A stretch of DNA of 63,835 nucleotides, filler included, from Neoconidiobolus thromboides FSU 785 (lineage: Eukaryota; Fungi; Entomophthoromycota), in the NCBI GenBank assembly GCA_025603075.1. It is 9 parts of 9 records of this genome, joined end to end, with 100 filler letters (N's around TTAATTAATTAA, not from the genome) between each part and the next. Parts side by side here need not be neighbours in the genome. Positions count along the whole stretch, not along the records: positions 5,339 to 7,919 come from MU626846.1; 8 more parts are not named here. One strand, written 5' to 3'. The notes beneath the pieces are model-generated. The model was not told the DNA's origin. It ran no database searches and saw only the letters and a list, made by a program, of their open reading frames with translations. The translations under genes were made by a program, and so were the position numbers. Below are positions 5,339 to 7,919 of this stretch, one piece after another; positions within the stretch are counted from its first letter, which is position 1, and each line of letters opens with the position of its first letter.

Positions 5339-5454
5339 TAACTTACAACATATCTTATAACAAATAGTTTAAAAGTGCTAAGTACTTTTGTTTTTTAATA
5401 AATAGTTTATCTTTATATAGTTCTAAGCAAAGTCCTAAAATATAAAATATAAAA
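5339..5454 (+). repeat. Left arm of inverted repeat bounding the HMG contig
   Basis: 115/116 identical to the reverse complement of 7804-7919; both arms run to the contig ends. Confidence 0.95.
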
Positions 5455-6104
5455 TCTTGAAAGTTAGATAAAAGAAATCAAATCAATTCCGACACCCCAT
5501 GTAATGCCTTTTGATGTTCAGTAGCGCTTCTTTTTTGATGTATTTTAGTTAGTTTTTTGCTATTTGTCATAACTAACATGGTTTTTTTTAACTTATATGC
5601 TATTTATTTATCCCTTATTTGTTATAACTAATAATATCTTTTAGAGTTTAATAGATATTTTATCATAATGTTATTTCATAACTAATAAAACTTTATAGGA
5701 CTTAGTAAGAATTTTTATTTTATTTGTAATAACTAATCGAACTCTTTAAAATTTAATAGGGATTATATTTTAGTAGTTATTTTATCTATTAATATATGTT
5801 GTGGGATATCCTACCGTTCCTTAAATCCTTAAAGGAGTTACTATTAAAACTGAGTGATTTGTAATAGCCTGAATATATGTATCAAACACTAAACAATTGA
5901 TATTTGTTTGGTCTATTATTTTTTACTTACTGCACACCTGGATACTCCTTTGCCAGTCAATCAATTCCCCTTTTATTATTTTTTTAGCTAACAAAATTTA
6001 ATCCTGTATATCTTCCTCAAATTAAAAGAAGCTTTACTTAAGAACGGTCTAATATCATTGGCTGAATTTAACTTATTAAAATAGGTTTAATTTAAATTAA
6101 AAAG

Positions 6105-6492
6105 ATTTGACTTAAATTAAAAAAAATTTAACCTATATTGGTAAAGGGTTTAAACATATGATTTCTATAAAAATCACTCAGGTGATGCATTCAATAGCTT
6201 ATATTCCTTATATTTATATTCTATTATTCATGCTAACACTAGCTTAATTTTGTGGCAAAAGTTATTTTACAAATAGCTGTGTATTTAACAATGGCCTACA
6301 ATTATTAAGGAAATTTGATTTAAATTAAAAAAGATTTAACCTATATCGGTAAAGGGTTTAAACATATGATTTTTATACAAATCACTCAAATGATGCATTC
6401 AATAGCTTATATTCCTTATATTTACATTCCATTATTCATGCTAGCACCAGCTTGAAATTTTGTAACAAAGGTTATTCTACAAATAGCTGTGT
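6105..6492 (+). repeat. Tandem ~180-bp direct duplication upstream of the HMG gene (6105-6282 / 6313-6492)
   Basis: Shared GGTAAAGGGTTTAAACATATGATT...GATGCATTCAATAGCTTATATTCCTTATATTTA...CAAATAGCTGTGT, about 90% identical. Confidence 0.9.
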
Positions 6493-6618
6493 TGCTTAAT
6501 TACTTTTGTTTCAATTTTAAAGAGTAAGTATTAGAAAAAGAATCTAAAGAGGATAAATCAAAAATAATTAGCCACCAATCAACCTTGACGTTATACCAAC
6601 AATCAACATACAACTAAA

Positions 6619-7209
6619 ATGCATAGCCCTTTAAGGTTAAATGAGCACCTGCTTTTTTTGGACGAAAGTAAGTTTGACTACCTCATTGAAAATGGCGATG
6701 GTATCAGAATGGAGCCTTTGAAAGATGAATTTTCTTTAGACCAGAAAGATTGTTTTTTTATCCCAGAAGGTCATTATCCTTTATTAATTTCAAAGTCATT
6801 TGCAGAAAAGATAATTATCAGAAAAGATGAAGATAGCTCAAGCGAAAGCAAAACATTATCTAAAACAGATGATACTGACAAAATACCTAGGCCTGCAAAT
6901 GCATTTATACTTTATAGGAAAGATAAACATAAGGAGATAAGTAGTACAAACAAAATGGCCGACAATAAAAAAATATCACAGATTATTGGTAGAATGTGGA
7001 AACATGAAGGCTTTGAGGTTAAACAAAGATACTTGGAGATGGCTGAAGCCGAGAAATCCATACACAAGACAAAATATCCTAACTATAAATATAAACCTAG
7101 GCAAAATATAAAGAAAAGGAATAAACCTTCACCAAAGCCATATTCTACTACACAAAATATGGAGCTCTATGATACACTGGATATCAACTTGGAGCCTATA
7201 TTTAAATGA
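6619..7209 (+). CDS. MATA-type HMG-box transcription factor (SexM/SexP/MAT1-2-1/ROX1-like), single exon
   Basis: KIPRPANAFILYRKDKH...NKKISQIIGRMWKHE...KQRYLEMAEAEK..HKTKYPNYKYKPR. Confidence 0.92.
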   Translation: MHSPLRLNEHLLFLDESKFDYLIENGDGIRMEPLKDEFSLDQKDCFFIPEGHYPLLISKSFAEKIIIRKDEDSSSESKTLSKTDDTDKIPRPANAFILYRKDKHKEISSTNKMADNKKISQIIGRMWKHEGFEVKQRYLEMAEAEKSIHKTKYPNYKYKPRQNIKKRNKPSPKPYSTTQNMELYDTLDINLEPIFK

Positions 7210-7803
7210 TTAGTAAATAAACGCTTAATATTCTTGTATAATTTTTCATAAAGCTATTAGAATTAAAAATATTTTATGTTTACATAATAGTTGCTTTTTT
7301 TCAAAAAAATCTTGAGAATATTACACATACAACCGTTTTGATAATATGAAGATCAAGTTATCAAACAAAGAGATTGAAGCCTCCAGAGCTCCTGAAGTTT
7401 TTTAAATTTATTTAAGATAATACCAAATATGATTGATTGTCTTTTATAAATCATTGTTCGCTTTAAATGAATTGTAAATGATATACAAAGTTTAAAACTC
7501 AAAAAGCAACAAAAAATATTTGATATGAATAAGCGTTTGATATTTATTAATGCCAAGTAAACCAAGGAGAAAAGGTTAGGTTTTGTTATTTAAAAGTACA
7601 ACTAAAAAAATTGTGTTTTTTTCGCTTAAAAGGTTGATGGTCTAAATAATTTATTAATTATAATAAAATTTTGAATACTCAAATTGAACAACTTAAGAGA
7701 CCTAGTGTTAGTGGAGATGTCCAAACTGGTTTCATTTTTTATTCATTTTTTAACTTAATTTTGGATAGGATAACCAATAAAATAGTATTAAAATAAAGCC
7801 TAG

Positions 7804-7919
7804 TTTTATATTTTATATTTTAGAACTTTGCTTAGAACTATATAAAGATAAACTATTTATTAAAAAACAAAAGTACTTAGCACTTTTAAACTATTTGTTA
7901 TAAGATATGTTGTAAGTTA
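7804..7919 (-). repeat. Right arm of inverted repeat bounding the HMG contig
   Basis: Reverse complement of 5339-5454 with one substitution. Confidence 0.95.

Follow-up and report, generated by a model that had tools for sequence, protein, structure and literature searches.

In Schizosaccharomyces pombe, the inverted repeats IR-L and IR-R are boundary repeats of about 2 kb that surround the roughly 20 kb of mat2/mat3 heterochromatin and act as chromatin boundaries, while in Saccharomyces cerevisiae the meiosis regulator IME4 is controlled by an antisense RNA. The sex locus of the Mucorales holds the HMG genes sexM or sexP between tptA and rnhA, and, to our knowledge, flanking inverted repeats are not part of it. 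Among the budding yeasts, flip/flop MAT regions are described in Ogataea polymorpha, Komagataella phaffii, Pachysolen and Ascoidea (PMC5720833, PMC4238957, PMC6692504), and the invertible region of these systems carries two opposite sets of MAT genes at its ends (PMC6692504). Outside the Mucorales and Dikarya, mating genetics is poorly known, and this has been stated for the Zoopagomycota in particular (2023 review, PMC10386755).

The locus described here comes from Neoconidiobolus thromboides FSU 785 and occupies positions 5339-7919 of the window, the 63,835-nucleotide stretch of joined genome parts that was analysed. It is a short-read contig of this AT-rich fungus that was left unplaced in the source assembly. 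A preliminary description had proposed that it is a mating-type-like HMG gene standing alone in an invertible or mobile cassette. The new element reported here is a spliced antisense RNA over the HMG open reading frame (ORF) at 6619-7209. Our preferred reading, held with slightly better than even confidence, is that of a static regulator gene flanked by a passive repeat, with low expression caused by antisense transcription.

The HMG gene and its relatives

The intronless ORF at 6619-7209 (plus strand), the only one longer than 70 aa in the contig, encodes a protein of 196 aa that matches the Pfam HMG_box family at residues 89-157 (6883-7089, plus strand) with an E-value of 1.9e-16. In the predicted structure, the box forms three helices with pLDDT values of 92-98, whereas the N-terminal region reaches only 59-69 and is uninformative. 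The closest solved structures are SRY and SOX, as for a box of the sequence-specific SRY/SOX/MATA class; among named relatives, MAT1-2-1, Mc and MatMc come closest, with 37% identity to Schizosaccharomyces Mc and 32% identity, across residues 4-167, to PNEG_02275 of Pneumocystis murina, the MatMc protein of that species (PMC6747714). A Basidiobolus protein is 45% identical, and Basidiobolus supplies the best match with the full architecture; Kickxellomycotina account for 9 of the 30 named best matches. By sequence comparison, these closest matches suggest an origin in an early-diverging lineage.

Residues 47-56 (6757-6786, plus strand) read FIPEGHYPLL, a form of the FIPEGxxPLL motif common to Schizosaccharomyces Mc, Pneumocystis MatMc and relatives from Basidiobolus, Entrophospora/Glomeromycotina and chytrids. 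Across 22 sequences, P49 and P54 are invariant and G51 is nearly so. The same motif also occurs in many MATA-HMG paralogues unconnected with mating, for example in Glomeromycotina, so that it is no proof of a MAT role. The product is a MATA-HMG factor of the Mc type, with the architecture of Mc and MatMc, which bears out the earlier assignment of an intronless, mating-type-like gene of the MATA class and provides a concrete candidate regulator. Further searches returned little: a word-indexed protein search gave zero matches, an exact look-up placed the protein sequence in none of the public assemblies on record, and a metagenome scan for relatives yielded distant HMG boxes only, at 50% identity or less.

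The cassette was found in all four DNA runs, and two of the four hold an additional copy of the gene that is 8-9% divergent. Among the ten differences listed for the ORF between isolates, six are synonymous and seven fall at third codon positions, a distribution that speaks for selection on the gene. Presence across isolates, a point raised in the preliminary description, is thus established for every DNA run, and for that same reason the locus is a poor fit to a presence/absence idiomorph. Around the HMG genes of the Basidiobolus locus and the metagenomic locus used for comparison, no flanking inverted repeats were found, and this speaks against a flip-flop cassette, the reading in which recombination between the arms inverts the segment.

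The inverted repeat and the contig ends

The contig is bounded by arms at 5339-5454 and 7804-7919 that form a 116-nt inverted repeat, identical at 115 of 116 positions (99% complementary), as had been described before. They enclose a unique segment of 2349 nt (5455-7803). The sole mismatch lies at 5434 in the left arm and 7824 in the right arm, which is base 96 counted from either contig end. The contig terminates within the repeat because the graph of an assembler working at k=96 was unable to pass it. One assembler that uses K=96 is ALLPATHS-LG. With the mismatch exactly 96 bases from each end, the shared stop base of both arms, previously taken as a feature of the cassette, is the break point of the k=96 assembly graph and has no biological meaning. 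In the source run, k=31 contigs confirm this logic independently, since they break at 5404 and 7854, that is, at the mismatch plus or minus 30 nt. The contig ends are therefore uninformative on where the repeat ends, and more generally the k-mer size of an assembler can yield a pattern of arms stopping at the same base that looks biological.

The left arm is truncated by the contig end. A k=31 arm contig of 126 nt from the source run reaches 31 nt past position 5339, in agreement with the earlier expectation that the repeat continues into the gap. Its depth is 870, against 462-485 in the k=31 contigs of the unique segment; three unrelated long contigs served as a depth reference, two at 444-447 and the third at 634.7, and Logan contig depth is a proxy only for copy number. 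The roughly twofold depth of the arm relative to the single-copy segment indicates a two-copy repeat. The inverted repeat is therefore real, present in two copies and at least 147 nt long, and it is not a high-copy element of the kind that, according to the preliminary description, might flank many unrelated genes. A metagenome scan with the outermost 40 nt of the arm gave no match.

Both arm junctions are reproduced by independent k=31 contigs of the four runs. Run X2 shows the same break points as the source run; in run X4 the contigs break symmetrically, at 5425 and 7833, and arm depth is 53 against about 25. These observations bear on the reading that the repeat is an assembly artefact, in which one end sequence was joined in both orientations to a contig with a single such flank. 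Assemblers can indeed create or inflate inverted repeats at contig ends, as in the DISCOVAR cases (PMC6692504), but the recurrence of both junctions in four runs, the mismatch that ties each arm to its own inner flank and the doubled arm depth make this explanation extremely improbable.

At the inner edges of the arms, similarity is lost abruptly. The best local alignment between the two inner flanks has a score of 29, compared with 25.3 +/- 3.0 for shuffled sequence, and 41 of 300 shuffles equal or beat that score. The inner end of the left arm is a (TAAAATA)n microsatellite with a 7-nt unit. Such an edge is a plausible microhomology breakpoint and would suit a long palindrome or inverted segmental duplication, whose kilobase arms would have been assembled elsewhere at twofold depth, with the HMG gene merely central. 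The arm depth and the continuation of the arm beyond the contig are in keeping with this view, and arms longer than the library inserts would more readily account for a 2.6-kb contig that stayed unscaffolded. However, the k=31 arm contig ends just 31 nt past the contig edge, so that the copies or alleles must differ there. We consider a long palindrome rather unlikely; it differs from the static, passively flanked gene in the length of the repeat only. The unplaced status of the contig could also be explained by two orientations or by long arms. Every contig examined breaks within the arms, and orientation is consequently not readable from contig data.

Several shorter repeats are present. Three exact copies of the 16-mer TATTTGTNATAACTAA lie within 5561-5736 (plus strand) at spacings of 55 and 105 nt, and weaker copies occur within both arms; seven matches were counted against 1.3 expected, and none of 200 shuffles reached seven. 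Upstream of the ORF, 6096-6492 holds a tandemly duplicated sequence whose period is about 208 nt; its two units (6096-6282 and 6304-6492) are 89% identical. The motifs GGGGTGTC (5491-5498, minus strand) and GGAGATGTC (7713-7721, plus strand) are separated from the arm edges by 44 and 91 nt, and the latter also falls 22-30 nt beyond the point where the antisense RNA contig ends. The preliminary description had read them as an outward-pointing pair resembling Sola-like termini. Both motifs are present at 5498 and 7713, but the Sola-like pairing is unsupported: they differ by an indel, their flanks share no other similarity, neither has a supported function, and the pair carries no weight. A degenerate inward extension of the inverted repeat linking the two was rejected, as its score fell within the shuffle range.

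The short sub-repeats within the inverted arms, together with the TATTTGTNATAACTAA copies in the arms and adjoining the left arm, would be in keeping with a mobile element, either a composite or a foldback-type transposon with a transcription factor gene captured between its inverted ends. Against this, there are two arm copies per genome, and every run with the arm also has the middle segment; the contig (5339-7919) has no transposase ORF; the inner flanks lose similarity past the arms; the Sola-like motif, an 8-9-mer, was picked post hoc; and the cassette sits at the same arm junctions in three differently labelled isolates. A transposon, composite or otherwise, is accordingly very unlikely, and the count of arm copies and the lack of a transposase speak against this part of the earlier proposal.

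A spliced antisense transcript across the ORF

A single RNA contig covers the locus. It spans 6196-7691, is 1361 nt long at a depth of 619 and omits 7196-7330. The omitted 135 nt carry the splice signals of an intron on the minus strand, with GTATGT at the 5' end and TACTAAT 13 nt before the terminal AG, and RNA depth inside it is zero. A plus-strand splice reading was rejected because its borders would be CC..TA or CT..AC. Exon 1 (7331-7691, minus strand) ends, with the RNA contig, 113 nt inward of the right arm. Exon 2 (6196-7195, minus strand) spans the entire HMG ORF, whose stop codon lies within the intron, plus 423 nt upstream of the ATG. Since the splice signals are on the minus strand, the transcript is non-coding and antisense to the whole ORF. 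Its longest minus-strand ORF is 49 aa, on which ground a protein gene of that strand, such as a homeodomain partner, was rejected. Rfam returned no match on either strand of the contig.

The main transcript of the locus in one RNA data set, its strand read from the splice signals, is thus a spliced non-coding antisense RNA. Some sense mRNA of the HMG gene may also be present, given that contigs drop rare variants. The earlier statement that the contig holds one gene remains correct for protein-coding genes and fails for the locus as a whole, which the antisense RNA also covers.

These features can be arranged into a mechanism in which a single-copy HMG gene, situated in a unique segment of 2.35 kb between two inverted copies of the repeat, is crossed over its full ORF by a non-coding RNA starting about 110 nt inward of the right arm. 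By analogy with some mating and meiosis genes of yeasts, this RNA most likely keeps expression of the HMG gene low in vegetatively growing cells. The repeat, for its part, is most likely a passive flank, either a low-copy repeat pair or the inner boundary of an inverted duplication, and it might allow rare inversion by homologous recombination, with no dedicated switch involved. Two testable hypotheses on the control of the gene follow, one from its position between repeats and one from the dominance of the spliced antisense RNA.

Comparison with known systems

The flip/flop MAT regions are the systems that the locus most invites comparison with. As in those regions, an inverted repeat encloses unique sequence with a mating-type-like gene, and short-read assembly is interrupted at the repeat, which here is real and present in two copies. 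In short-read data, the signature of flip/flop MAT regions, whether proven or inferred, is a short inverted repeat reaching the contig ends (PMC6692504), and the present contig was left unplaced. In a flip-flop cassette, recombination between the arms would invert the 2.35-kb segment, and its orientation would set HMG expression by a position effect exerted from outside, by a silencer, centromere, telomere or promoter. In run X4 the arms match each other without a difference as far as the inner edge, while those of the source run have one mismatch, and this is compatible with gene conversion between the arms. In contrast, the known regions have opposite MAT gene sets at their ends, and their inverted repeats measure at least about 2 kb (PMC6692504, PMC5720833), with a silencing centromere or telomere beside one end. 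The present region, known from contigs alone, has one coding gene and 147 bp of proven repeat; opposite gene sets at the segment ends are absent, the minus-strand ORFs being 49 aa or shorter. Moreover, the unique segment contains both the HMG gene and the point where the antisense RNA contig ends, so that flipping would leave their mutual relation unchanged. We regard a flip-flop cassette as decidedly unlikely. Less probable still is a one-gene switch for sexual identity, in which the segment inverts and its orientation, together with the antisense RNA, sets expression; if true, it would represent an origin independent of the budding-yeast flip/flop systems.

The static, repeat-flanked gene that we favour shares with the Mucorales sex locus, by description, the feature that an HMG gene is the candidate for determining sex, in a fungus of an early-diverging lineage. 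Unlike that locus, the contig (5339-7919) contains neither tptA nor rnhA, and the second copy in two isolates, just 8-9% divergent, is not an idiomorph. As with IR-L and IR-R of S. pombe, inverted repeats bracket a region with an Mc-type gene, a likeness known here from sequence alone. The antisense RNA resembles that of IME4 in that a non-coding RNA from a downstream start crosses the whole ORF of a putative regulator of sexual development, although here the RNA is spliced and its regulatory effect, proposed by analogy, draws on one RNA data set.

The comparison with the mat1-M Mc gene of Schizosaccharomyces and MatMc of Pneumocystis concerns the protein above all. The surroundings differ, as the contig has no recognisable partner gene Mi or Pi and no known cassette homology boxes, and its flanking repeats are inverted rather than direct. 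The protein itself, at 196 aa, is similar in length to Mc and MatMc (179-232 aa), is 32-37% identical to them along most of its length and presents the same elements in the same order: an N-terminal F[IV]PxG[FY]xP[ILV]L motif, a linker, the HMG box and a short basic tail. The full Mc/MatMc architecture in Neoconidiobolus indicates that this type of protein, including its N-terminal motif, is older than the Dikarya.

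The HMG gene and its protein family

The contig at 5339-7919 (2581 nt; G+C 21-33%) carries a single substantial ORF, at 6619-7209 on the plus strand, which encodes a protein of 196 aa; the remaining ORFs, of 51 and 70 aa, are not protein-like in appearance, and an Rfam search of the piece returned no match. The Pfam HMG_box model matches residues 89-157 of the protein (E 1.9e-16), the nearest solved structures are the SRY and SOX boxes (E about 1e-12), and in the AlphaFold model the three-helix box is confident (pLDDT 92-98) and the N-terminus uncertain. Among 1.84 billion cluster representatives there were 7012 matches, none above about 54% identity, box included. 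The best matches with names are fungal: proteins from Basidiobolus ranarum (45% over 117 aa), Diversispora and Entrophospora (the latter 33% over 180 aa), Jimgerdemannia, and the Kickxellomycotina Smittium, Furculomyces, Mycoemilia, Linderina and Coemansia, together with MAT1-2-1 proteins of Pezizomycotina, Schizosaccharomyces Mc (37%) and P. murina PNEG_02275 (32% over residues 4-167), the MatMc of that species (PMC6747714).

Similarity to these relatives extends outside the HMG box to an N-terminal motif, FIPEGHYPLL, at residues 47-56 (6757-6786, plus strand), which is matched by FVPEGYTPLL in Schizosaccharomyces Mc, FVPHGFQPIL in Pneumocystis MatMc, FIPEGYYPIL in Basidiobolus and the recurrent form FIPEGFEPVL in the Entrophospora (Glomeromycotina) protein. 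When 22 such proteins are aligned, P49 and P54 never vary and G51 hardly does, and the motif lies 20-160 residues N-terminal to the box in 35 of the 163 proteins fetched. Its general form, F[IV]PxG[FY]xP[ILV]L, precedes the box in fission-yeast Mc, Pneumocystis MatMc, Basidiobolus, Glomeromycotina and one chytrid (P0008, P0012, P0151, P0122, P0073); no description of it was found in the literature examined. MATA-HMG genes are strongly expanded in Glomeromycotina. Since the motif occurs in many MATA-HMG proteins, it defines an Mc-like subfamily, with no mating-type role implied. The HMG box, the matches to MAT1-2-1, Mc and MatMc, and this motif support the preliminary description of the gene as mating-type-like. 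Ten differences between isolates are listed for the ORF; six are synonymous and seven are at third codon positions, a pattern that fits a gene under constraint.

Structure, copy number and extent of the inverted repeat

The two ends of the contig, 5339-5454 and 7804-7919, are confirmed as inverted arms of 116 nt that are 99% complementary, with a sole mismatch at 5434/7824, base 96 counted from either contig end. A (TAAAATA)n microsatellite forms the inner edge of each arm, and similarity ends immediately past it: when the 296-nt inner flanks are aligned locally, the top score is 29, a value reached in 41 of 300 shuffles (mean 25.3 +/- 3.0). The motif pair, likened to Sola-like termini, that had been placed just inside the arms (5498 minus, 7713 plus) found no support: each motif occurs once, the two differ by an indel and are not equally far from the arms, and their flanks are otherwise dissimilar. 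The termini used for that comparison belong to pieces outside this genome stretch. Three exact copies of TATTTGTNATAACTAA start at 5561, 5616 and 5721 (5561-5736; spaced 55 and 105 nt), far upstream of the ORF, with weaker copies inside both arms, giving seven matches against 1.3 expected, a count reached in 0 of 200 shuffles. Their core resembles an HMG-type AACAAA site, a likeness of little weight in DNA this AT-rich, and the copies could be binding sites or a decayed minisatellite.

The two arms had been noted to end on one and the same base at the contig edges. ALLPATHS-LG uses K=96, and a de Bruijn path at k=96 enters a shared node by k-1 = 95 bases and then halts, so that contig ends of this kind are expected; the contig starts with the first 96-mer holding the arm-distinguishing base (5339-5434) and ends with the mirror 96-mer. 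Independently of the k=96 assembly, the graph logic is reproduced at k=31: the Logan contigs of the source DNA run end at 5404 and 7854, 30 nt outward from the mismatch in each arm. Because the coincidence matches assembly-graph behaviour at both values of k, the shared stop base is an effect of the assembler and is uninformative on the true end of the repeat. The same signature accompanies IR-flanked MAT regions, where short IRs reach the ends of short-read contigs, and IRs at contig ends can be inflated by assemblers (Krassowski et al., PMC6692504).

The repeat itself is real and, as had been guessed, runs past the contig edge. In the source run, the arm contig spans 126 nt, comprising 5339-5433 and 31 nt outside the piece; the identical stretch thus reaches 31 nt past the contig end, so that the repeat measures no less than 147 nt. 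At the point where the arm contig ends, its copies (or else a pair of alleles) differ or diverge. Its word depth of 870, against 471, 485 and 462 for the unique contigs of the locus, indicates about two arms per genome, contig depth being not a copy number and serving as a proxy within this one pure-culture run only (three unrelated long reference contigs: two at 444-447, the third at 634.7). Each arm is connected to its own inner flank. Break points in organism B are the same as in the source run, and those in organism C are symmetric (5425 and 7833), meaning that its arms are identical as far as the inner edge; arm depth there is 53 versus about 25. When the arm alone was searched, matches were confined to five runs, all of which also hold the middle (5455-7803).

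An assembly artefact is excluded by the independent contigs, the roughly doubled arm depth, the linkage of arms to their own flanks and the recurrence in organisms B and C, and a high-copy element by the same depth and by the presence of the arm only in runs with the middle. A composite transposon, also proposed at the outset, is judged unlikely with about two arm copies per genome. The source run and organism B carry the 5434/7824 mismatch and organism C lacks it, a distribution that could reflect either gene conversion between the arms or a young mutation.

Antisense transcription across the HMG gene

In the RNA run, which carries the same organism label as the source run, a single contig, of 1361 nt and depth 619, falls between 6122 and 7774; RNA depth elsewhere in the piece is 0-6. 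It covers 6196-7194 and 7330-7691, skipping 135 nt for which there is no RNA contig at all, the bin values of 206.5 and 71.2 being exactly what the exon parts contribute to those bins. On the minus strand, the skipped part starts with GTATGT, carries TACTAAT 13 nt before its end and ends in AG; a plus-strand splice, whose borders would be CC or CT at the start and TA or AC at the end, was rejected. As canonical splice signals exist only on the minus strand, the spliced RNA is minus-strand. Its start is near 7691, 113 nt inward from the right arm; it spans the whole HMG ORF and 423 nt past the ATG, and contains no ORF above 49 aa. The contig end at 6196 falls inside the first copy of a tandem duplication upstream of the ORF (6096-6282 and 6304-6492; period ~208 nt, 89% identity).

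Because the antisense intron includes the HMG stop codon, a complete sense mRNA has to cover that intron; no assembled contig of the RNA run does so, giving no complete sense mRNA contig, although contigs lose rare variants and sense mRNA may still exist in this run. The dominant RNA species at the locus in this sample is antisense. By analogy with mating and meiosis regulators of yeast, we infer that the antisense RNA may keep HMG expression low under the condition sampled, which was presumably vegetative growth.

Isolates, related loci and known mating-type systems

The cassette was found in all four DNA runs (1.00, 0.95, 0.83 and 0.79 of sampled words). Organisms B and C hold an additional version that diverges by 8-9% and spans, at the least, 6393-6654, 6914-7058 and 7203-7504; it is at about half the depth of the main version in B and equal depth in C, and absent from the source run. 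This version is either a recent duplicate or an allele, the sample then being heterozygous or mixed. Its flanks appear to have no more than the ~35 nt at the inner edge in common with the arm (loose ends: 5436 in B, 7825 in C), and the pattern looks unlike idiomorphs of the sexM/sexP type.

Basidiobolus ranarum is homothallic, and its HMG gene has a neighbour on the same strand, 935 nt away, that is also an HMG gene but with another architecture (L010:4570-7357, JASJQH010000272.1). One product has 375 aa and an N-terminal box, the other 241 aa, Mc-like with the FIPEG motif; the boxes are 51% identical, and the pair represents a possible paired HMG locus. No IR flanks the HMG gene at this locus, nor at that of a metagenomic relative, which has ordinary neighbours; the repeat-flanked arrangement is therefore not conserved in the family.

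Of the originally proposed invertible or mobile sex-determining cassette, the mating-type-like gene and a genuine two-copy repeat continuing beyond the contig stand, whereas the coincident ends and the motif pair do not. On balance, we lean towards an Mc-type regulator gene, flanked by repeats and under antisense transcription, that is static or recombines only rarely. A switch that flips this one gene seems improbable, as the two opposite gene sets that define flip/flop systems are absent here.
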